Of a stretch of 64,000 bases of DNA, positions 9,592 to 51,894 are shown in pieces. The position numbers and the translations under genes were made by a program. A model generated the notes under the pieces. It was not told where the DNA came from, did no database searches, and saw nothing but the letters and a program-made list of their open reading frames with translations. The DNA lies in assembly GCA_964057225.1 (NCBI GenBank), contig OZ059896.1, positions 15,314,001 through 15,378,000 on the forward strand. Direction: 5' to 3'. Position 1 is the stretch's first letter, and the number at the start of each line of letters is the position of its first letter. This stretch comes from Auanema rhodensis (lineage: Eukaryota > Animalia > Nematoda).

Positions 9592-10003
9592 AAGAGAAAG
9601 AGAAGGGGATGGAGGGAGAAGAAGATCATTTTCGTATCCATATTTGAGTTTTTGTCCAAAGACATTTTGCCTTTCTACCATCAACATGATCTATCTCATG
9701 AATAAATTATATTTTAGAACTACAAAGATAGGAAAAAGGAGTATTAAGAGATGAAGATGTGAAAATGCATCATTTGAAATGAAAAAGGGAATATGGATGT
9801 ATTCTCTTGATATTGATTCATCCAACTAATGACTCTTCTTTATATTTCTTTTTTTTTAATTTGACTGCTTTAACACATCTCATACATACATATACGCAGA
9901 CACATTTTCAGTTTTAATCTTGCAATTGTTGTTCTGTTCTTTCTATTTATGGTGCCTGCTATATAGTTGGTCTAGACTTTCAGTACTATTTGATCAGCTA
10001 TGT

Positions 10004-10075
10004 GGGGGTATAGCTCAGGGGTAGAGCGCTCGCTTTGCATGCGAGAAGTCTGGGGTTCGATTCCCCATACCTCCA
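10004..10075 (+). tRNA. tRNA-Ala(UGC), copy 1
   Basis: 72-nt cloverleaf GGGGGTATAGCTCAGGGGTAGAGCGCTCGCTTTGCATGCGAGAAGTCTGGGGTTCGATTCCCCATACCTCCA. Anticodon TGC, G3:U70 alanine identity pair, A box and B box (GGTTCGATTCC), T5 run just downstream. Confidence 0.98.
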
Positions 10076-10080
10076 GTTAC

Positions 10081-10085
10081 TTTTT
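10081..10085 (+). terminator. Pol III oligo(dT) terminator of tRNA copy 1 (repeated after each copy)
   Basis: TTTTT begins 5 nt after the discriminator base. Confidence 0.8.
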
Positions 10086-10297
10086 GGATTGTTTGGAAAT
10101 GTGATAAGCGGCGTTTCATAGATCCAACTTTTTATCTGTTTTGGGCCATAAAACTTTGTTTATAATCATTGCTGATTCCACCTTTTCACATTCTACATTC
10201 GTTTGTTCCGTTTTTTTTATTTTAGTTTCAAAAAAGTTTTCAACCTAGGTAAGTTAGCTTCAAAACTTCCATGAGATAGCATTGATTTGAAATGCAT

Positions 10298-10369
10298 GGG
10301 GGTATAGCTCAGGGGTAGAGCGCTCGCTTTGCATGCGAGAAGTCTGGGGTTCGATTCCCCATACCTCCA
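10298..10369 (+). tRNA. tRNA-Ala(UGC), copy 2
   Basis: Identical to copy 1, 294 bp downstream. Confidence 0.98.
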
Positions 10370-10591
10370 GTAACTTTTTGGATTGTTGGGAAATGTGATA
10401 AGCGGCGTTTCATAGATCCAACTTTTTATCTGTTTTGGGCCATAAAACTTTGTTTATAATCATTGCTGATTCCACCTTTTCACATTTTACATTCGTTTAT
10501 TCCGTTTTTTTGATTTTAGTTCCAAAAAAGTTTTCAACCTAGGTAAGTTAGCTCCAGAACTTCCATGAGATAGCATTGATATGAAATGCAT

Positions 10592-10663
10592 GGGGGTATA
10601 GCTCAGGGGTAGAGCGCTCGCTTTGCATGCGAGAAGTCTGGGGTTCGATTCCCCATACCTCCA
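10592..10663 (+). tRNA. tRNA-Ala(UGC), copy 3
   Basis: Identical to copy 1. Confidence 0.98.
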
Positions 10664-10885
10664 GTAACTTTTTGGATTGTTGGGAAATGTGATAAGCGGC
10701 GTTTCATAGATCCAACTTTTTATCTGTTTTGGGCCATAAAACTTTGTTTATAATCATTGCTGATTCCACCTTTTCACATTTTACATTCGTTTATTCCGTT
10801 TTTTTGATTTTAGTTCCAAAAAAGTTTTCAACCTAGGTAAGTTAGCTCCAGAACTTCCATGAGATAGCATTGATACAAAATGCAT

Positions 10886-10957
10886 GGGGGTATAGCTCAG
10901 GGGTAGAGCGCTCGCTTTGCATGCGAGAAGTCTGGGGTTCGATTCCCCATACCTCCA
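10886..10957 (+). tRNA. tRNA-Ala(UGC), copy 4
   Basis: Identical to copy 1. Confidence 0.98.
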
Positions 10958-11179
10958 GTAACTTTTTGGATTGTTGGGAAATGTGATAAGCGGCGTTTCA
11001 TGGATCCAACTTTTTATCTGTTTTGGGCCATAAAACTTTGTTTATAATCATTGCTGATTCCACCTTTTCACATTTTACATTCGTTTATTCCGTTTTTTTG
11101 ATTTTAGTTCCAAAAAAGTTTTCAACCTAGGTAAGTTAGCTCCAGAACTTCCATGAGATAGCATTCATATGAAATGCAT

Positions 11180-11251
11180 GGGGGTATAGCTCAGGGGTAG
11201 AGCGCTCGCTTTGCATGCGAGAAGTCTGGGGTTCGATTCCCCATACCTCCA
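11180..11251 (+). tRNA. tRNA-Ala(UGC), copy 5
   Basis: Identical to copy 1. Confidence 0.98.
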
Positions 11252-11473
11252 GTAACTTTTTGGATTGTTGGGAAATGTGATAAGCGGCGTTTCATAGATC
11301 CAACTTTTTATCTGTTTTGGGCCATAAAACTTTGTTTATAATCATTGCTGATTCCACCTTTTCACATTTTACATTCGTTTATTCCGTTTTTTTGATTTTA
11401 GTTCCAAAAAAGTTTTCAACCTAGGTAAGTTAGCTTCAAAACTTCCATGAGATAGCATTGATATGAAATGCAT

Positions 11474-11545
11474 GGGGGTATAGCTCAGGGGTAGAGCGCT
11501 CGCTTTGCATGCGAGAAGTCTGGGGTTCGATTCCCCATACCTCCA
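11474..11545 (+). tRNA. tRNA-Ala(UGC), copy 6
   Basis: Identical to copy 1. Confidence 0.98.
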
Positions 11546-13533
11546 GTTACTTTTTGGATTTTTGGGAAATGTGATAAGCGGCGTTTCATAGATCCAACTT
11601 TTTATCTGTTTTGGGCTATAAAACTTTGTTTATAATCATTGCTGATTCCACCTTTTCATATTCGTTTATTTCATTTTTTGATTTTAGTTTCAAAAGATTT
11701 CCAGAGCTTTTTGAGCTTTTCTTTTACAATTGTATCACGTTGTTATTCTCCGGAACCTTACGACAATTCAAACAACAATAGAAGCTCAGCTACGTTACTC
11801 GCTTACTCTTAACCTTCTCCGCCAACTTCGCATGTTTCTTTTCTGCTACTACAATAGACAAACACACGAACACTAAAAAACAAAATTGAAAGAAATCTAA
11901 CAGCCCCGAGGCAAGACGTGCCAGCCGAGAATCGGGAGAGGAACTTCCACTCTTGATGGACATATTCGGACAAAAGCAAATTCTCATCTTCGTTCATCCT
12001 GCTAGCCTTGTGTCACTCTATCTCCCTTCCTCCTTTTCCCAAACTCTCTCTTTCTCTATATTCCTCCTACTCCGTCACTTCTAGTTTCTTTTTGCCTTCG
12101 AAAAGCTCCATATCCGATTATTTCATGTCATCAAGATCACATTCATTAATCAAGTTATTCAAAAGTATGTTCAAATAATATGAACTTGTTTTCGAAATGA
12201 ATAACTGGAAAAGATATTTTTGAATCGTCTAGCTTGAAATATTTAAGCTACAACTCTAACATAAACCCATGACTAAATAAGAAGAGTCACTCAGTCAGTC
12301 CACCGAATATTACAAGGTCATAGCCATTAAATCTGCAACAGATATACTAAGTCACAACGCAGAAGAGCGTTCCGGATTCTTCTCAGTCACTTTATGCCAT
12401 TGGTCAAGACGATGAGATGATTTGGCTTTGTAATCTTCTCGTGTTAGTCGTTCGTGACACCGTTTTCCGGAATTTAAATTTTTGACAACGGACTAGGAGA
12501 AATGAAAATGAGATAATTAGATTGAATAGCCCAATCAGCTTGTACTTCTTTTGTATTTACATATTTAATTCATTATATATAGATATACATATACATATAG
12601 AATATTGAATCAAAAAAAAATTTTGAACATGAGTTGCAGAGGGTAGTTCTTTCTAATATTCGTACTTATAACCAAAGGTTACTCTAATCCTGACCCATTC
12701 ATCCGTTCCTTTTATTTCGTATGTCTGTATTCTCTTTCATCTCTATCTATCAGTTACTCCCAATACTATCTATCTATTTCTCTAAGGTTCAGTCCTTCTT
12801 CATTCAAAGCTTTTGCTATACCCCTCTTCACCGAACTCTTGGCTCTCAGATATTTCTCTCATTCAATCACTCCCTCTCATTCCTCTTCTGTTATCCCTTA
12901 TCTGAATAAACTGTGGGGATGTGTATGTGTGAGTGTGTATGTTACCCACTAACCCAAGCTTACCGCAACCACCCGGAATATATGTGACAGCTGCTCTATC
13001 CTCGACTGTGTGAATGTGTTGTTGTGGAAAATTTCGTTCTTGCTCCACCTCTTATCCCTATTTTCTTTTAATCACTAACAATGAAAATCATAAAATACTC
13101 AGTTTGTTTATAAACGGAGGTCAATGAGAAAGATGATGATGATAGCCGAAGTAACAAGAAGAGAATATTCCGATACCGTTCAAGCGCACGTGAAAGTTCA
13201 CGCGAACGAACTAATTTTGGATGAAGTGGCTCAGGCGAACGGTTGTTCGTTTGTCGTGTCAGCGTGTCGTGCTAACTTCTCAAAGCTCATTGAAATTCAT
13301 TTTCGTTTTCTTTTCGATATTTCGCATCTTGCTTAGAGTGTTCGGTTTCCAATTGCCCTAGTTTGTGCAGATTGTCTCTCTGCAGCCTCGGAGCTAGGTA
13401 CAGATTTTTCTATGTTTCTCTTAAATTCTTTGAAAGCAGACTGGAAAGCTGAGAACAGCTGCATTTCTCCTACGGCATAGGTTTTCTTCTTCAATATCCT
13501 TTTCTCTTCCTGCTGCCTTTCTTTATCCATCTT

Positions 13534-22584: not shown

Positions 22585-40360
<17,776 letters not shown>

Positions 40361-40597: not shown

Positions 40598-41745
40598 TTA
40601 TATATATAAATATATATATCTGTCTTTTTTTTGATCAAATTCTCTCTCCTTATGTCTCTCTCTCTATTTCTTTCTCTCTCTCTCTCTTTATTTCTCGAAA
40701 TGTTTTATCGTGTTTTTCTGAATTGACTCACATGTACTTTCAACCTTATATGGATTAGTTTACGGATTTATCTGATTTTTATTTTACTTTTTGTACATTT
40801 AATCGTCAGCCAAGATAGATAGAGACGGTAAAGAACCAAAGAAAAAAACAAATTATAATTATAGGAAAAGTTATAAGAAAAGAGATTTGAGAGATTGATG
40901 AAGAAGATGATGATAAAACTTCACAAATCTTCAATATCGCTTTTCTTTTTTACTTCATCGACCATTTAGTCAGACTTTTCTTAATTTTTTATTTTTTTGT
41001 TCAAAAATGAAAAAAATACGATTTAGAGGATTGTATCCTTTCTGAGAAAAAGCCAACGGTTTATTGTTTTTTTACATAACTATTTCATATTTTCATGTTG
41101 GCATTTTTTGAAGAAAGGAAAGTAATTTGTTTTCTCTGGCTACAACAATCTGTTCTTTCTCCTCTATCTGTCTTCCTCCCTCCCTCACCCCTCCCCTCCC
41201 TACTTTCCAATCTTTCAGTCAAAAACTTTCAAAATAATAATTATTAATTGTCATAGTAAATATGCAAAGTATACGAGATAGAGGTTATAAACACCCCCAC
41301 GCACACATCCACCATCCACTATCACAAACACTCACACTTCCCACTTCCCTTTCACATACTATAGAGATTCTTCTACCTTTTCTTTATTTTTTTTTTGTTT
41401 TTTTTTTCTAAAACAGAATTCAGACGATTATGCATCGATACGTGATCTATCCCCTAGTCGGTCATGGTTTTCATCATCTATTTCATTACGAGTATTCATC
41501 TGGCGCTTATATATCTGTGTCTTATAAATTACTTTTTTATTATTATTTTGTTTTTTTTGTGACGTAATTTAATCCATATAAGGTTATACATTTTGCCTTA
41601 GTTATCATCATCTATTATTATATCATGATTTTTATATTTTGTTGATTCTCTTTGGAATTTTTTTTCGTATAATAAATTTTAAAAAAAATTTTATATTTAA
41701 TTATAAAAGTAAATAAATAAATATTATAAACAACTAAGAAATGCT

Positions 41746-41894
41746 AATCGTATACCATATAGGTAACTAAAGATGATAAACTATATGAAAATATGAGAAA
41801 AAGGAAAAGCTTACGGCACCCGGGATTCCCAAGCCGTCTCCGATCCAAGTACTAACCGGGAGTGCAACCGTTCCTTCTAATTTGGTTTTGAAAA
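41746..41894 (-). repeat. Fragment of the 5S rDNA repeat unit with a 99-bp internal deletion
   Basis: Matches 44546-44661 joined directly to 44761-44794. Confidence 0.95.
41808..41860 (-). pseudogene. 5S rRNA pseudogene (3' 53 nt only)
   Basis: Identical to 44609-44661. The 5' part of the gene and its proximal upstream flank are deleted. Confidence 0.93.
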
Positions 41895-42798
41895 ATAAAA
41901 ATTTGTAAATCAGATCATCGATCCTCACGTTTACACGTTAATATTCTAATTAACTTGAAAAGCGAAATATATGCTTATCTTTCCTTATTATCCCCATTAT
42001 AACTTAGTGGGGATTCCAAAAATTCACAGAGGGGTCTTAATAGACCACACAGATGTTTATATGTGTTTATAAATATTGTCATTATAGTATATCAATTCTA
42101 GATCCGACAGTTCACCGTATTTCAACTAGGTGTTGAAAACAATATTCGACATATACAATAGAAATAAAGGAAGAGATTACTTAAAACCGATGAGAGCCAT
42201 AATTAAAACTAAAAAAAAAACAAAATTTTATAATTAGGATTTTATATGATTTTCACATCTTCATAGAATAAACTTCTTTTATTCTTTTTGTGAATATAAT
42301 ATGGAATAAACAAGCTTCTTTCTGACGTTTAGGCTAATGATAATATCAGATTTGAAAATCAAATGATCAGATACTTATAGAATATTATATATGAAGAGAT
42401 TCAGATACTCAAAATAATAAATCCAAAACTAATTCTCAACTGATTGTACATAATAACGTTATTACGTTTTAGCGTAAACAGAAAAATGATACATCCGGTG
42501 CTTTTTGTTGAGTAAAAAAGGAATTGCAAGCTGATGAGAACAGAATCTTTATCAGTTCCCTGATATTCACATTAAGAGTTATCCGTCATATCTGATTTCA
42601 ATGGTAATGAGTTTGAAATTTAAAAAAATCAGAAATAGTATTGCTCGTTCTCCATATGTATTCTATAATTGCATTTCTTGTTATTTCATTCTTAGTACAC
42701 TTTGTTCATATTGAAATGGAAACATCTGTGATTTTCAGATATTACTTGTAAGAACTATCTATTTACTGTAATAATTGGAATTTATTCTTATAATCACA

Positions 42799-44217
42799 AT
42801 GTTAACTTCAATTCTTCTAAGTCTTCTAAGTTTTGCAACGATTACAGGATTTTGTATAACTATTGTTGTTTTAATTCCGGTATCTATATTAGCCTTCAGG
42901 TATAATATTTATAATTATAAATATATCATAAATCTTGAATATTAGGAGAAAATCTTCACCAATTTACTATATTGCTGTTTCTAATCTTTTAATTGATTGT
43001 ATTCTACTGTTTACAACCATATGTTATATCATTCCTGCATTCATATTCCAAGTAAAACATGTTTAACATCAGCTTCATGCTTAAACTGTTATTTCTAATA
43101 TAGACATGGATTTTTGCTGATGGTGGTAATAGTGAAGCTGTTAAGCTTGTTTCGGATATTTTTAGATTTTGCTGGTTTTTCACATCAGCTTCACATCTAA
43201 CTGCCTCTCTTAATAGGTAAATTTGAACCAATTATATAATAATAATCAATCAATATTTTAAATATTTTAAAGAGTAACTGTTGTATGTTTTCCTACATAT
43301 AACATATTTACACATAAACTTGTTAAAATATATGTTGTAATAAGTTTCTTTATTAATATATTTTTAACTATATTAACTCAACGTACATTACCATGTTGTG
43401 CGTAAGTTCTTCAAGTTGAATGATAATATTAATCTTTGAAACTTTAAGAATTGCTGTTGATATTGATTTATATTCATATACATATAGATTTATTGATAAT
43501 CTTACTAACTATGCTGATATCTATATTGATTTACCATATTGTCTAACAACAACTGTTATATGTGCTATAAGCTATACAACTGTATGAGTTTATTTTTAAA
43601 TTTTCAATAGATACATCTTTCATATTTTTTGAATAGCATTATTTAAACTTGATCTTAAACCTCTCAAACCTAAGCTCCAAGCTTAAATTTAACTTCAGAT
43701 CATAATGAGCTTAAACATCAGAGTATGATAGAAACTTTTATTCAATTAAAGGGTATCTAAATGGTTTCTAATTTTTTTTAGATTGTACTTCATGTTAGAC
43801 AATCAACAAAGAATTATACACTCAGCCAAACTATTCGACAAAAAAGAAAAGTTCAAGAGTATACGTGAGATAGATCATTCAATCAATTGGATAAAATAAT
43901 TTTTTTAGTTATGCCATACAATTCTGTGCCATTTCTGTGTTTTACCTTATAGCTTGGATCATGTTTCGACTTTTGCCATATTCCATAATAACATATGAAG
44001 CTTCATTGAGTTGGTTGATCATTAGCCCAATTACAGTATCTATTACCTGTAGTGCTAATGGCATTATTTATCTTTTAACCAATAAAGAAGTAATTAATTC
44101 TATCATAATATTCTCAAAAAATAGTAAATTTAATTATAGGTTCGACGAATTATAGAAAAACGTATAATTTCAATCGGAAGAGGGAATTCTGCTGTTTCAA
44201 TTATTAAAACTTATTGA
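42799..44217 (+). CDS. Nematode serpentine 7TM chemoreceptor, Srx/Srxa-like, 8 exons, apparently intact
   Basis: Spliced translation: MLTSILLSLLSFATITGFCITIVVLIPVSILAFR / RKSSPIYYIAVSNLLIDCILL..CYIIPAFIFQ / ..FCWFFTSASHLTASLNR / ..LPCC / ..YSYTY..NYADIYIDLP.. / ..EYTYAIQFCAISVFYLIAWIMFRLLP..SANGIIYLLTNKEVRR..KTY*. Seven hydrophobic segments and Srx-type motifs. TTTTCAG ending 42738 is a possible trans-splice site, and AATAAA lies ~30 nt after the stop. Confidence 0.85.
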
Positions 44218-44367
44218 AATTTTTTATATCTTATTATAAAAAACAAATAAACAGAATTATGAACAATTGAATTCAACCGTTCCTTCTAATTTGGTTTGGA
44301 AAATTGACGCGTCATGAGAAAAATGACGTCATTTCACGTGGAACAATCTTCCATAATATGCTAATCA

Positions 44368-44430
44368 GCCTTATCAGGCATTCAAAAATTGCGTATATCA
44401 CCCATGTTTCAGGGAATATCGCGGGTAATT
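44368..44430 (-). ncRNA. Candidate Sm-site small RNA (SmY-like architecture) in the 5S spacer; second copy at 44859-44921
   Basis: Minus strand reads: bulged hairpin GCGATATTCCCTGAAACATGGGTGATATACGC, then AATTTTTGAA, then hairpin GCCT-GATA-AGGC. Structural inference only. Confidence 0.3.
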
Positions 44431-44608
44431 GGGAAAAGTTTTCAACCAGCAATAAACGCACCTCGGCAAAGCCTCATTGGTCACGTTATCACCACTGCGC
44501 AAAGCTGTCTAACAGTTGACTCGGAAAACGAAAGCATTTCTAGTTAACCGTATACCATATAGGTAACTAAAGATGATAAACTATATGAAAATATGAGAAA
44601 AAGGAAAA

Positions 44609-44727
44609 AGCTTACGGCACCCGGGATTCCCAAGCCGTCTCCGATCCAAGTACTAACCGGGCCCAACGTTGCTTGACTTGCCAGATCGGACGGGATGGCG
44701 TACTTTCAACGTGGTATGGTCGTAAGC
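44609..44727 (-). rRNA. 5S rRNA
   Basis: 119 nt GCTTACGACCATACCACGTTGAAAGTACGCCATCCCGTCCGATCTGGCAAGTCAAGCAACGTTGGGCCCGGTTAGTACTTGGATCGGAGACGGCTTGGGAATCCCGGGTGCCGTAAGCT. Nematode-type 5S with paired termini, followed by a T run. Confidence 0.98.
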
Positions 44728-45293
44728 GAATGCTTACCTTTCTTTTCAGAATATGTATGGAGTGCAACCGTTCCTTCTAATTTGGTTTTGAAAATTGACG
44801 CGTCATGAGAAAAATGACGTCATTTCACGTGGAACAATCTACCATAATATGCTAATCAGCATTATCAGGCATTCAAAAATTGCGTATATCACCCATGTTT
44901 CAGGGAATATCGCGGGTAATTGGGAAAAGTTTTCAACCAGCAATAAACGCACCTCGGCAAAGCCTCATTGGTCACGTTATCGCCACTGCGCAAAGCTGTC
45001 TAACAGTTGTCTCCGAAAACGAAAGCATTTCTAGTTAACCGTATACCATATAGGTAACTAAAGATGATAAACTATATGAAAATATGAGAAAAAGGAAAAC
45101 AGCTATTCACCCGAATTTTGACATGCTCAAGTACAGTTAAAAGCTGTGAATGTCGAATGATGCTACCCTATCTGTGTTACCTTTAATATAATAAAATTAT
45201 TTTAACTATATCATATAAATTTAAAAAATTTAAAAATAAAATTTAATATAATTTATATTTACAATAAAAACAATTATGTACAACACGAAGACT

Positions 45294-48200
45294 TTATACC
45301 CTGCTGCCTCCAACCAATGATTGTAATTTGCTATATATATATTCTATATCAGCCTTAAATTATAATTAAGTTTATTATAATTAATGATTTTGATGTTATC
45401 ATACCCTTGATGACCAGATTCCACAATGTAATTGTACATATGAGGAAATTATAAGGACTGTATCAACACATCCTTGCTGTTCTAACTGACAAGCTAACGA
45501 AGTTAGGGCACATAGTATATAAGGCAATGATGGTGATGTTTCTAAACAATTGTATAATTCCAAATCAATAATCTGAAATTAAGATTACCTGGGGAAAAGA
45601 ATGTGAGACTATCAAGACGTTTTTCATTAAAATCTATGTTTGGCTCAGTAGAATCTAGTTTTGGCACATTCATCTGAAATAGGAGATATTTGATGTCTTA
45701 TAGTTCAAGTTGGTCTAAAATGCTTTAAAAAGGTTTTTTCACTCACAATTGAAGGTATATAAGGATTTAAAATGACTAGAGGTGCATCATGATATGCTAA
45801 ACGTTCTTTCTGAATTCTTTCTATTTCGCCCCAAACATCTTTGGCAAGTTTTTGTCGGCAAACCGGGATAATTCGAACACAAAGCTAAATATATGCTGTT
45901 AAGTAAATAGATTAAAGTTGTAGCTTTACCTGATCTTCCTTATTCTGTAAGAGAACAAAGTTCTCACCATGTTCAATGGTCATCTCTCCAACTCGATCAA
46001 TTTTAGACCAATAGCTTTGTTCACCTGAGGAGACAAATATTAGAAAATGTTGAAAAAGCAAAATAAGTTTGAAATTTCAAGTTTCAATTTTATTATAAGA
46101 GATAAGACAAACCTAGGAATATCACTGTCTGGCAATTCTTATGCCAAATCATTTCCCATAACTGTTCAGTTTCACATGACCAGTTAGCTACAATGAATTC
46201 ATCTAATCGATGATATCCCTGAAATATTATTTAAATTATAAATAAAAAATAGAAATTATAGAAACTAACCGGTAAAACAATATAATCTGATATTGGAACA
46301 CATAGAGGATTATGCTTACATTCACATAAATCTTCATATTGCATTTGTAATCGACTTTTTCCATTCACATTTTCTTCAGCTAAGTAATGTAAATATCTGA
46401 ATTTATTTATTTATTTTAAGTAAACAACAACAATAACAACAACAACAATCAAAAACAATATCAATTAATAATAAAAAGTACCTTTGGAATAGATCAGAAT
46501 GCACTCTAGTGATTCCATGTCGAATAAGCTGTCGTACAGCTTCATGACATAACTCATATTGTTCCTATAAAGTTTTAACTTCATTTATTATTCAACAAGA
46601 TATTTCATTTTTGTTAAATAACGATAACTCAAGGCTTCTTTATATAAGGAAGAACATACCACTGTTTGGACTAGCTTCTCTCGTTGACGTCGCATATGAA
46701 TCAGATGACCCATGAGATTCAAACGACGAAAATTTATCAGATGACATCTCATACTATCAATAAGAATATAAGAGCCTGATCGGCCAACACCCGCACTGAA
46801 ATTTAAGTTTATCCAAGTTTTCATGAAATTTTAAATTTTTTTTGGAGCTTGAACATACCTGCAATGGACTACAATAGGACCCGTAGAATGAATATCTGAT
46901 GCGTAATGCATGAAATCCAGAAGAGGGAAGACTGAATCTGGCACTCCATGATCAGGCCAGCCTTTGAAGTGTAGCTGATGAATCTTACGTTCTGCCTGAA
47001 ATTCCAGTCTTTAAGCTTAAGTTGGTGTCAGGTTGTAGCTTACCGGTGGTACACATTTATTCAATTTTAGGCTAATAATACGATGAATAAAATGGGAATT
47101 ATGTGTTTCAGATATCAGTGAAACTTGATAATTTCCATGAAGTTGTGGAGAATCCACAGAAGCTGGCCAATACTGATCGCATTTTCTCTGAAAAATTCAA
47201 CAATCTTCATAAGCATTCTCAAGTAATTAGAACCAACCCGTCCATCTTCAACCAGATTCGTGATAACGACGATGATATTGCATCGTTCTTGCCACATCAT
47301 AGCCCAAAAATCAGCAAAAGTAGATGGCAATGGAGCTTGTGTAGCGATATAAGCATTGCGTTTATCACATGACTATAAGAAAAAAGGTTTAAACTCTAAG
47401 CAACTTGAATAGTATTTCCCTATAATGACCCTATTTCTTATGTAATAATATGAATTTAACTCATATGTTTAACTAAATTTCAAACAATTCAATTACAGAT
47501 ATCTAACTAACTACAAAATTGGTTGAAGATTGTTTGCTGAATACATCAACTTAATCATCACATATGAAATTTAATATTTATATGTTCGTTCTAAGGAAAA
47601 TATAATAAGAGAGAGAGAGAGAGATAGAGAGAGTGAGCGAGAGCGCTCGTTACTTCAAAGCTGACTGTTAGGTCACTAGGCTGTCTATCGCTCTATTATC
47701 TACCTAATCCTAAATTGAATTCTCATCTGGAGGACAGCTGATTCGATGTCTCTTTTCTTACTTGCAGCTTATTTCATTTTATAATCCATAAAGACAATCT
47801 ACTTACATCAATATAATTGGCGTTTATATAGTCAGAGCCAGTGGCTGTATTGAGTCGAACACGTGAAGCTTCCATTGCTCCAATATTCAGATATCTAAAA
47901 CAAATTGAAAAATTTTTAAGAATTGTGAATATTGGTTGAATACCTATTCTTATCTAAATTCTTTTGCAAAGCATCAGGTGATGAACAATCATTTGAAGTC
48001 ATATTTTCGATTGACTGAAATGAAAAAAACTTTGTTATAACATGAAAATCAAGTTGATTTTCTTTGAATTCCCATCCTATGTGATATCATTATTATAATC
48101 AATTCATAAAGTTATTTAGTTTCATTCTCCCTCAGCACCCACAAAGTAAATTATTCTCATCAGCATCTTTAGATAATTAGATAAAGCCATTTGGTTTAAG

Positions 48201-51200
48201 AATGGTCCAAATATGGACTATATATCTTTAACTCGTTGCTCTAATTTACATAACAAAGCTGTCGGACAAATTGTCATACTTGGAAGTACATTAAGAGAGA
48301 ATTGGACAGAGAGGGAACAGGGTTAAGAAGATAGAAAAGACGAGACAGCCAGATAGAACATTCTGATAGATAATATAAAGGAATGGCATACAACTTCCGA
48401 TTACTAAATCACTGACTACTTCTTCTTCTCCCCTTCCATTCTTCTTTCTCTATCTCTTCCTCTCCCTCTTTTCCTTTAATAAGAGAGAAGAGAACAAGCT
48501 GGATCTATTTAAGTCTTCAAATCAATCAAACGTTTGGAAGCATCATTGTTAAGAAGACTATTTGAATATATAATCCGAACACCAGAAGCCTAACGACAAA
48601 GTTTCAAATTCAGCTTTTACAGCCATGCTTTTCCTACGAGTATCCCCATTCACATCTTATTCCCTTCTCACCTTTCTTTCATTTAAGTATTCAAGGGATC
48701 TAATCTCAAAATTAGTATGAATAGAAAGGAGATTGACTCAATACAAGGCTGATCCTATGATGATGATGACGGCCAAATTCTGACCCATCACCGACCATTA
48801 CAGCTAGTATTTCTTCCGCTTCTCTCCTACTAACTAGTAGCCTTCCTTCTTCTCTCGCTCACTTCTTAATTCCACATTTGACCCCACTTACGTCAAACTG
48901 GGTCCTATACTTGCTCTTGTTGTTACGTGCCAAATCTTCACAATAGCCATAAAACAGCTCAACAGGAATATCTTCACATCCGGTAGAATCTGAAGAGGAC
49001 TCATTTCAGAATTATTTTTCTTAATTCATACCATAAACCAGTGGACTGAGCTCATCCAAATAAACACATTTTTCTTTCTTTTTCTTTAATAAACTCTTCA
49101 TATCAAAACATCTTCTGAAAGAAATATATTGAGGTTTTTAAATAAAATAAGAGAAATATGATACCCTTTAAGGATATATGCTACTAAAAAGCATAAAAGT
49201 ACAAAAATCATTAAAGCAACTAAAGCTATTAGATATGAGAATCGTCGACTGGGATAGGCTTGTACAAGTCGTTGACATTTTGAATTATTCACACAAATTG
49301 ATGAAAAGTATGAACAATGATCTGAATCAATATAATTAAAACTTCATATTTAAAGGCTTTTGCTTACCATTCAAAATGAAATGATGCACATCACTCCATG
49401 GTCCTTGAATTCTTGTACGATTATCAACAGCACTGGTTACTGTAGTTTGAATTCGAACATCATATTCACTATATAAAGCCAATTCAGTGACTTCTAGCTG
49501 AATAATATTATAAATTCAATAAATAAGAATATAAATTGATTTAAACCTTATTAACTGTAGTATTAAATAATAAATTTCGTGTTTTATTGCCCATTTCAAT
49601 ACGATATTCAGCTCTTCCTTTAACTTTATGCCATTCCATTTTAATTCCTCCATTACAATCATAAGATAAGCTTAGTAATTGTGTTGGTGGTGGAACTGAA
49701 AACATTAAAATTTATTGAAAATCAAAAGATATAACTCAGTAATACCATCAAAATCAGTGGTGACTGTGTATTCTCGTGTCTTAGGTCCTTCTCCTTTCGT
49801 AGTTGTTGCCGAAATTCGAACACTGTGTATGCTATTAGGATCTGGAAGATGGTTGGTTATACATTAATTAATTTTAATATATATTTAATTATATAAAAAA
49901 CTTACTTAATCCAGCAATTTCATGTCGAAAACTATTGACAGATCTATCATGTACTGGAAAATGATCAACTCTCCATCGTGTCATATCGTGATTCTTAAAT
50001 TAATAAAATTATAATTAAAATATTTATAAATCTAAAATATACTTTATAATAAATATTAAACTGTTTTATATGTTCAATATCAGATGGATCCATTTTCCAT
50101 TTAACAACTATACGTGGAGATCCTAACATTGAATAAACTTTTATGTGTGATGGAACTAATGGTGTAACTATAATATTTTTGTTTTTATTTAGTAAAAGTA
50201 TTTTTATTTTCTTACCAATTTCATCTGAATGAAAAACTTTCTTTAATGCTGGAGATACTCCAAAATCATTTTCAACTGTAGCTGATAAGGAATATATTGT
50301 ATTTGGTTGTAAGTTACACACATTCAATGGCATTGCTGTATTACCGGGAAAACTGAAAAGGACAAATACAACGTCGGCTGAATGAATTCAGAATCACTTA
50401 CTATTCACGACGAGATTCCGAATCTCCTAATTTGTTTGTAATCACCGTATATGATTTAATATCACCATGCATCTCAACTGGTGGAAGTATATTCAATGAT
50501 ACACATCCAGTTGTTGAATTATTCATTGAAATGAATTGTGGTCCTTCATTTGGAGCTACAAGAAGAGACAAAAATTATTATTTGAAGATTTTTTCATAAA
50601 AAGAATGAGAGAAAATTTTTATTTTTTGATACTTTTTGTTCAACGATCCTCTCTAATCTACAACTTTCAACCTATCCCTCTTCTTCTCCTATATGTGTCA
50701 ACCCACCATTACATCCCTCTCTCATAAAACCTTTCAATTCTTTTTCATTTTAATCTCAAAAACATATTTTTTATTTAAAAGCATTTAATCTATGTATAAT
50801 GATTCTATATTCAAATAAATAAGAAAAAAAAGAAGAAATATGGGCTAATAACATCGAAAATCGAATAATCTTTCCTCCCTCCTGCTGGTGAGATTAATGA
50901 CAAATCATGATAGTTTTTCGTCTTTTACAAACATTCCCCCCCCCCCTAAATAGCATCAATACTCTCTCTTCTTCTCTCTCTAACCCCAATCTCTTTTGAA
51001 GTTGCGTTAGATATTAAGAAAATAATTTCAAAAACAATTATTTTTTTAAGAAACGTATAAAATGAATGAGAAGCCTTACCATTTCCTAATGTTCGATGTT
51101 TGGTAGCAGGACCAAAATCACTAGTTCCAGCTGAATTCTCAGCTCGGATTGAAAAAGAATATAAAGTAAATGGTGATAGATTATCAACTATAACGGATGT

Positions 51201-51894
51201 AGCATTCGTTGGTGCTGGTATGATGAAACGATGATTGCTCACAAGATTCCTGAAGTGAATATGACACAGTTGTATGAAGAAATACTGTTTAAAACATACC
51301 GAACAGCCACAGAATATCGAATGATGGGACGATGAGCTCTGGCTGTTAGGTGGTTCCAACTTAAGGTTACAGAATGATTTGTAGATAATTGAATATCAGG
51401 TGATGATGGTGGTACTGGAGGCACTGAAAACAAAACAAAATGTCATTGCCCCTCTCTATAAATGGTTTAAGAAAATGATCATACAGGTTATTATTCTATG
51501 TATTCCCCCTAATCTTATACTCAGTTCAATCCCAATTTTCTTTTTCTCTATCTAACTGGATGTTCTTATTCCAAGAACATTACTTAAAGTATATGTATAC
51601 ACATTTTATATTCAAATAACTATATACATATAATAAATAATTAGAAGAAGAAAAGAAAAGACTAAATCATATTCGATTAATCTGAAAGTATACAAAGTAT
51701 TTCTCTCTTCTATTACTAACTATGTTGAAATAACTATACATAGTAATATATACATATAGTTAGATGTATATATGTTTCCATATTTTCTCAATTTCAAATA
51801 AAAATGTTTTAATTAATCTGTACTGGGCACAACATGTATCGTATTACAGCTACCTCTCTACATCCTACCCAATCCCGAGCATCCTCAATTCCTT

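Follow-up and report, generated by a model that had tools for sequence, protein, structure and literature searches.

We analysed a chemoreceptor gene embedded in a fragment of a tandem 5S ribosomal RNA (rRNA) repeat of a rhabditid nematode. The stretch of DNA under analysis (hereafter the window) covers 64,000 nucleotides (nt), C4:15314001-15378000 of a 181-Mb assembly. Repeat and gene together form a composite of 3.35 kb, with a repeat content of about 2.1 units. The repeat unit is 491 bp long at this locus. It is not the plain 5S unit of the first-pass annotation of this DNA: the 5S gene is present (107.5 bits), but each unit also carries a complete U4 small nuclear RNA (snRNA) gene, as recognised with Rfam (Table 1). 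The right part of the repeat (44274-45099) consists of one full 491-bp unit and 335 bp of the next one, and its outer edge lies exactly where the 3' end of the next 5S gene would start. The left piece (41745-41894) comprises a 64-bp spacer, the 3' 52 nt of a 5S gene, the last 6-7 bp of the region upstream of the 5S and a 30-mer. The rest of this 5S gene and most of its upstream region are gone through a 96-bp internal deletion (unit positions 389-484), and the remaining half gave no Rfam 5S match. The deletion junction (41860/41861) has 2 bp of microhomology and is found nowhere else in the genome. Direct repeats of 117 bp are formed by 41745-41860 and 44545-44661. Both outer flanks of the composite are unique in the genome.

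The gene lies between two copies of the 30-mer CAACCGTTCCTTCTAATTTGGTTTTGAAAA. This sequence occurs three times in the window, where no copies are expected by chance: the copies that end the left piece and start the second unit are exact, and the copy that starts the right part deviates by a single mismatch (T to G). The 36-mer that ends with the left copy (41859-41894) is identical to 44759-44794. Removal of 41895-44273 and of one 30-mer leaves a collinear array, and the local fragment would then span unit position 272 to unit position 335. The removed segment of 2379 bp occurs only once in the assembly. The first-pass annotation had reported the two direct repeats, the unrelated DNA between them and the collinearity of what lies outside; repeat search, the uniqueness of the insert and alignment bear it out on the three points. 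Its left 5S fragment does end in the 30-mer, and also carries the genome-unique deletion.

The gene model is intact, with eight exons (924 nt, 307 amino acids), GT-AG boundaries at all introns and no internal stop codon. It is preceded by 904 bp of DNA upstream of the ATG and followed by an AATAAA signal 29 nt past the stop codon, in agreement with the earlier description of a self-contained gene. We made the similarity searches exon by exon, and joined the exon peptides only for the tree and for the counts of frame, stops and hydropathy. The model has hydrophobic segments where transmembrane segments 1, 2, 4, 5, 6 and 7 are expected; the third is weaker. When searched alone, none of the exons matched Pfam at E ≤ 1, and a six-frame scan of the genome with PF10328 (7TM_GPCR_Srx) matched none of 25 paralog sites. 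A profile of exon 7 built from 18 paralogs retrieved 93 proteins from a representative library. We scanned ten of them, nine of about 310-350 amino acids and one fused model of 520, and eight matched PF10328 (45-82 bits). Furthermore, the alignments of exons 1-5 and 7 to two proteins that match this family (P0004 and P0007) are collinear and abut one another. The model thus shows full-length collinear similarity to Srx members and a seven-transmembrane topology within about 300-350 amino acids. The earlier assignment to the Srx-type G protein-coupled receptors is therefore supported in a transitive manner, i.e. because relatives of the gene match PF10328, while no exon alone does; we regard the gene as a probable Srx-type receptor. 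The best identity of exon 7 outside this genome is only 53%, indicating that the library contains no proteins of a close relative.

We found no terminal inverted repeats, long terminal repeats (LTRs) or transposase in the insert, and no open reading frames (ORFs) other than the exons. A transposon can be ruled out, since the segment has neither such repeats nor an ORF for a transposase or reverse transcriptase, and is single-copy. The matching termini of a Helitron or another gene-capturing element were not seen by eye. A processed retrocopy is also ruled out: the gene keeps its seven introns and its 904 bp of upstream DNA and has no poly(A) tail, no A-run being present just before the right junction (44253-44273). 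Hence, as the first-pass annotation had proposed, the structure arose at the DNA level, not via RNA or a transposon. The repeat around the gene is a unit fragment away from the main arrays and with unique flanks, i.e. an orphon.

Table 1. Features of the composite of 5S-U4 repeat and Srx-type gene (positions in the window).
Feature	Position	Strand	Basis
64-bp spacer (unit positions 272-335), left outer edge	41745-41808	-	98% identical to 44545-44608 and 45036-45099
3' half of 5S rRNA gene, truncated by 96-bp deletion	41809-41860	-	alignment
Left 30-mer, T variant; repeat homology ends	41865-41894	+	repeat search and alignment
Unique non-coding DNA, 904 bp, presumed promoter	41895-42798	+	single in genome; no significant likeness to repeat unit
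Srx-type seven-transmembrane chemoreceptor gene (probable), 8 exons	42799-44217	+	GT-AG introns, no stops, paralog exon structure, collinear to PF10328 proteins
Exons of this gene	42799-42899, 42946-43051, 43104-43216, 43273-43401, 43449-43581, 43782-43864, 43909-44089, 44140-44217	+	
AATAAA polyadenylation signal	44246-44251	+	22 bp before right junction
Right 30-mer, G variant; homology restarts at unit position 1	44274-44303	+	G variant common in main arrays
U4 snRNA gene, unit 1	44368-44506	-	RF00015, full-length, 117 bits (threshold 46)
5S rRNA gene, intact, unit 1	44609-44727	-	RF00001, full-length, 107.5 bits (threshold 38)
Third 30-mer, T variant, start of unit 2	44765-44794	+	repeat search
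U4 snRNA gene, unit 2	44859-44997	-	RF00015, full-length, 113 bits (threshold 46)
64-bp spacer, right outer edge (unit position 335)	45036-45099	-	alignment

The composite sits between two convergent genes. The last large exon of the left neighbour (39175-39987) encodes the C-terminal tail of a voltage-gated calcium-channel alpha-1 subunit (egl-19-like), and has orthologs in strongylids and Diploscapter. The right neighbour (46588-51359, minus strand) is a receptor tyrosine phosphatase with tyrosine-phosphatase and fibronectin-III exons. Elsewhere in the window, six identical tRNA-Ala(UGC) genes form a perfect 294-bp tandem array (10003-11546).

The main arrays of the composite unit, which was also read at a main-array locus (L035), are found on C4 at 15.500-15.605 Mb (490-bp units, inverted relative to the window) and at 16.26-16.33 Mb (471-bp units). 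The window fragment (15.356-15.359 Mb) is 140-250 kb away from the main array. There are about eight dispersed 5S-U4 pieces genome-wide, a handful of which lie between 14.55 and 16.44 Mb on C4. The 15.5-Mb array is divided into eight blocks, and at least five of the seven gaps between them (G1, G3, G4, G6 and G7) are LTR retrotransposons. These have LTRs of 349-417 bp that are 99.7-100% identical, ORFs of 1692-3100 amino acids and, where readable (G3 and G4), target duplications of 5 bp. The array insertions that could be typed are thus LTR elements and look quite different from the insert in the window. One element of 8.3 kb (C4:15532652-15540979, loci L038/L039) lies inside a 5S gene, with the target duplication CATAC, LTRs of 401 bp that are 99.75% identical and an ORF of 2398 amino acids. 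A 2024 review stated that no transposable element insertion inside a 5S gene had been reported so far (PMC10946416). Another element is present twice in the array (C4:15543817-15555889 and 15586507-15595882), in opposite orientations and at different unit positions. The second copy lacks about 2.7 kb of the first; the shared parts are more than 99.8% identical, which indicates a very recent transposition into the array. We also found 5S copies without U4 at other periods, at C8:9327225-9335389 (about 2676 bp) and C6:7908800-7910763 (about 476 bp), showing that the genome has several kinds of 5S arrays.

Some positions of the unit recur as limits of homology. Unit position 272, the left outer edge of the window fragment, is a recurrent left edge of dispersed pieces. 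Unit position 1, where the right junction falls in the window, is also the point at which the homology of a solo 5S at 15.862 Mb stops, coming from the opposite side. Position 1 thus separates a 5S module from a U4 module, and a small hairpin (GGAGTG-CAAC-CGTTCC) spans it, in the window at 44759-44774 and 41858-41875. Close to the hairpin, TGACG(C)GTCA palindromes are found at unit positions 32-58, a region that also contains a length polymorphism of 19 bp and the sites of two retrotransposon insertions. Deletions of the 5' part of the 5S recur as well, with different breakpoints: positions 389-484 in the left piece of the window, about 364-459 at the distal end of the main array (L045:9720-9880), and 410-459 in a variant class of main-array units of about 435 bp.

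The genome encodes about 25 paralogs of the window gene, and the 20 that we fetched have the same exon structure. A check for other genes flanked by 5S DNA, suggested in the first-pass annotation, did reveal one such paralog, of the shared exon structure, at C4:15498646-15499900 (locus C4:15498129-15500047). It is placed at the edge of the main array between two collinear 5S pieces. Its outer neighbour, decayed to 78% identity, consists of part of the region upstream of 5S and the initial 23 nt of the gene; on the array side are the last 25 nt of a 5S gene, with which the main array starts, about 70 nt of the 5S being missing. This paralog has the same direction as the 5S, as opposed to the window gene. 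A further paralog (C4:14556392-14557968) has a 270-bp piece of the unit in its intron 5, on the opposite strand and 92% identical to the unit. This cassette (L047:1274-1543, C4:14556774-14557043) comprises the 30-mer and a complete U4 with its promoter and 3' flank (Rfam, 117.9 bits). Thus, three of the about 25 paralogs touch 5S-U4 DNA, in three modes of contact (between spacer repeats, inside a 5S gene and through a U4 cassette placed in an intron). Another two are 6.5 kb away from an array edge. By a hand estimate, about 0.03 such contacts are expected genome-wide. Within the 2-Mb region that holds the arrays and eight of the paralogs, p is about 0.005-0.05 depending on the definition of touching, again estimated by hand and without a permutation test.

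The interpretation we favour is that a gene-bearing segment was inserted into the 5S-U4 fragment during the repair of a break, an event whose direction, mechanism and timing we infer. We give it a probability of roughly 0.45; this and the weights of the alternatives come from rough likelihood reasoning and are not a computed statistic, and a small remainder of the probability is assigned to none of them. The starting point would be an orphon of about 2.1 units derived from the tandem 5S rRNA and U4 snRNA repeat of the chromosome. A double-strand break would have occurred where the 5S half of a unit meets its U4 half, and 2.4 kb of ordinary chromosomal DNA with a complete, old, single-copy Srx gene would have been joined into the spacer during repair. 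The 30 spacer bases on both sides could result from the fill-in of staggered ends, from synthesis primed by short homology, or from recombination with a fragment or circle carrying the 30-mer. This would have been a relocation or an old event rather than a recent copy, because no donor exists. The flanks may have stayed similar to the array through gene conversion, or may look so through a recent move of the whole 3.35-kb block. Integration of a circle through the 30-bp homology would explain the T/G difference and needs a gene that was next to repeat DNA beforehand. It is a possible route, which in these data is indistinguishable from the repair of a staggered break.

Several observations support an insertion into the repeat. 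The flanking pieces have the same orientation, are in consecutive phase and overlap by 30 bp. As collinear pieces are found at two loci, one event per locus is sufficient, whereas independent deposits would have to match in orientation and phase twice. Without its insert, the fragment starts at position 272, as other dispersed pieces do. Unequal exchange, through which tandem arrays expand, cannot skip a gene. The array is a frequent target of insertions, as its retrotransposons indicate, and the deletion in the left piece, with its microhomology, is a second repair scar at the locus. The hairpin lies across the junction position; that it makes unit position 1 prone to breaks is speculation. 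In C. elegans, the 5S cluster has non-rDNA (non-ribosomal DNA) interruptions at a fixed unit position, and transgenes have landed in it (PMC8961926).

Other observations weigh against a captured gene. A genome-wide search revealed no donor locus: the insert matches the genome at the level of exons only (66-71% nucleotide identity), no near-identical copy is found elsewhere, and the nearest paralog has 50% protein identity. The tree of the paralogs is star-like and places the window gene on an end branch of 0.56 changes per site. The repeat next to this old gene is 99-100% like the main arrays. In a comparison with 60 complete units of the main arrays, private differences are absent from unit 2 (335 bp) and number three in unit 1; the left piece shows a single one, besides a change in the length of an A-run. 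With flanks that look so young, a recent insertion must have been cut-and-paste, and an old one requires the continued homogenisation of a piece of 150 bp, while a comparable repeat piece beside the main array has decayed instead. At unit position 25, where the flanking 30-mers disagree, the main arrays are polymorphic, with dozens of units of each type. The two copies differ at a site that was already polymorphic, and hence need not be a duplicated target. Unit position 1 is the exact start of the intron-5 cassette and of a truncated piece (L061, C4:14564736-14564883, with the 30-mer and the 3' 40 nt of U4 at L061:365-483, C4:14564765-14564883), both with unrelated DNA to the left, and the right junction would fall there by coincidence about once in 150 unless the site is break-prone. 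(Two tRNA-like genes were noticed by eye a few hundred bp past the other end of the truncated piece.) At each embedded locus the inserted segment amounts to exactly one complete gene, promoter and poly(A) signal included, which is unexpected for DNA captured at random. Lastly, the direction is unambiguous for the intron-5 cassette: repeat DNA entered a resident Srx gene. The absence of a donor, a nearest paralog at 50% and the array-like flanks contradict a recent copy-type version of the capture proposed in the first-pass annotation; the assembly excludes a recent copy-and-paste event. This leaves three readings: a gene that was relocated, an old event whose flanks have been homogenised, and a resident gene.

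The last of these would reverse the order of events. The Srx gene would be an old resident, and the 5S-U4 pieces would have been deposited recently on both sides by break repair that copied or ligated array DNA, in one complex event of template switching or in two events. The 30-bp repeat would then be a mere overlap between a left piece that ends at position 30 and a right piece that starts at the position-1 boundary. We consider this somewhat unlikely. It would account for an old gene without donor next to repeat pieces nearly identical to the main arrays, for 30-mers that represent different array variants, and for a segment between them that is exactly one complete, functional-looking gene. 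Moreover, both pieces start at recurrent boundaries (272 on the left, 1 on the right), and the U4 cassette in intron 5 shows that repeat DNA lands in resident Srx genes. Templated insertions at breaks are known in C. elegans (PMC4032859, PMC4490562), but those made by polymerase theta are tens of bases long, not 150 and 826 bp. The deposits would also have to be made 2.4 kb apart in the same orientation and in nearly consecutive phase, and this would have been repeated at the array-edge paralog. With about eight dispersed pieces genome-wide, two independent landings so close to each other are improbable. The left piece might have been copied locally from unit 1 or unit 2. We rejected this possibility: the piece differs from unit 1 at two sites, and a local copy leaves its start at the recurrent position 272 unexplained.

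The arrangement could also be inherited. If 5S, U4 and Srx genes had been interspersed before the composite repeat was amplified, gene conversion could have kept the local copies similar to the array, and positions 1 and 272 would be limits of homology rather than breakpoints. The solo U4 cassettes (L047, L061) and a solo 5S (L062), whose homology ends at the same module boundaries, are consistent with this view, as are the contacts of three of the about 25 paralogs with 5S-U4 DNA and the proximity of two more. We nonetheless find it improbable. The right part includes a true junction between units, with 5S followed by U4 and no gene in between, which argues that it derives from an array. Common descent of all array-linked paralogs from one embedded ancestor can be rejected, as they form no clade in the tree. 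Finally, neither the insert nor the two outer flanks revealed significant decayed remnants of the unit in Smith-Waterman alignments with shuffles, nhmmer searches and anchored alignments. Several likenesses picked by eye, between 42109-42180 and unit positions 269-342, between 44253-44273 and the 5S upstream region, and between 45100-45175 and the 5S, did not exceed those of shuffled sequences (p = 0.05-0.8), and the nhmmer searches gave no match. A likeness of 50 AT-rich nt between 41684-41733 and 44217-44266 appears to be an effect of composition.

Tandem 5S arrays are difficult to assemble (PMC11643116), and a unique sequence of 2.4 kb might have been misplaced within a collapsed repeat. 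Such an artefact is very improbable here. Both junctions and the junction of the 96-bp deletion are unique sequences, the local units carry private variants, and assemblers do not join reads on an overlap of 30 bp. Furthermore, the assembly of the neighbouring arrays separates individual retrotransposon insertions and shows their target duplications.

Dispersed solitary pieces of tandem multigene families, such as those of rDNA and histones, were reportedly named orphons by Childs et al. in 1981. The window fragment resembles them in being short (about 2.1 units), inverted and 140 kb from the main arrays, with more pieces on the same chromosome. Unlike them, it has an intact protein-coding gene within it or between its pieces, and a repeat of 30 bp marks the two junctions. 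Transposable elements are common in 5S spacers, and circles have been discussed as a route of rDNA mobility (PMC10946416). These insertions also place foreign DNA in the spacer between direct target repeats, whereas the window insert is single-copy, has no LTRs, inverted repeats or transposase, and is flanked by a repeat of 30 bp, where the LTR retrotransposons of these arrays have 5 bp. The 5S-SL1 cluster of C. elegans is interrupted by non-rDNA sequences at a fixed unit position and has received reporter transgenes (PMC8961926). There too, 5S units are broken at a defined position; the interrupting DNA consists of repeats or artificial transgenes and 5S is paired with SL1, whereas here a native chemoreceptor gene is found and the partner is U4. 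In yeast, TAR1 is described as a protein-coding gene within the rDNA unit (PMC8961926). It is likewise a polymerase II gene among rRNA gene repeats, but it is present in every 35S unit, whereas the gene in the window interrupts a single spot of a dispersed 5S-U4 fragment. Insertions made by break repair share with the window the sharp junctions, a small deletion with microhomology nearby and a short target duplication. Chromosomal fragments are captured at double-strand breaks in yeast. In C. elegans, repair by polymerase theta produces templated inserts (PMC4032859, PMC4490562). Known inserts of the templated kind are short and their template persists, whereas this insert has 2.4 kb and no template is left. 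Our literature search retrieved no description of a native chemoreceptor gene within a 5S array, nor of a tandem linkage of 5S and U4.

It is unusual for a 5S array to contain a native protein-coding gene. This genome alone fits both a gene that entered the repeat and a repeat that was deposited around a gene. In the case of a resident gene, this would be no more than an ordinary orphon and its 30-bp repeat would only resemble a target-site duplication, a possibility worth knowing before the locus is cited as a case of gene capture. Chemoreceptor families are the nematode genes with the fastest turnover, and the movement of single genes is poorly known. Mobility of 5S arrays is known, as are the orphons that they release and the partner genes that they acquire. 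The first-pass annotation had linked mobile 5S units to the dispersal of chemoreceptors. This link gains support, as two more paralogs touch 5S-U4 DNA; the array-linked paralogs, as stated above, form no clade in the tree. In its broadest form, which we find doubtful, the 5S-U4 arrays would recurrently exchange DNA with one Srx subfamily, acting as a hub that relocates chemoreceptor genes along the chromosome: break-prone repeats would capture whole receptor genes and seed their own pieces into others. If the contacts with Srx genes reflect such a mechanism rather than neighbourhood, the instability of the repeats would be tied to the relocation of receptor genes, and this locus would provide a dated, sequence-resolved example of it.

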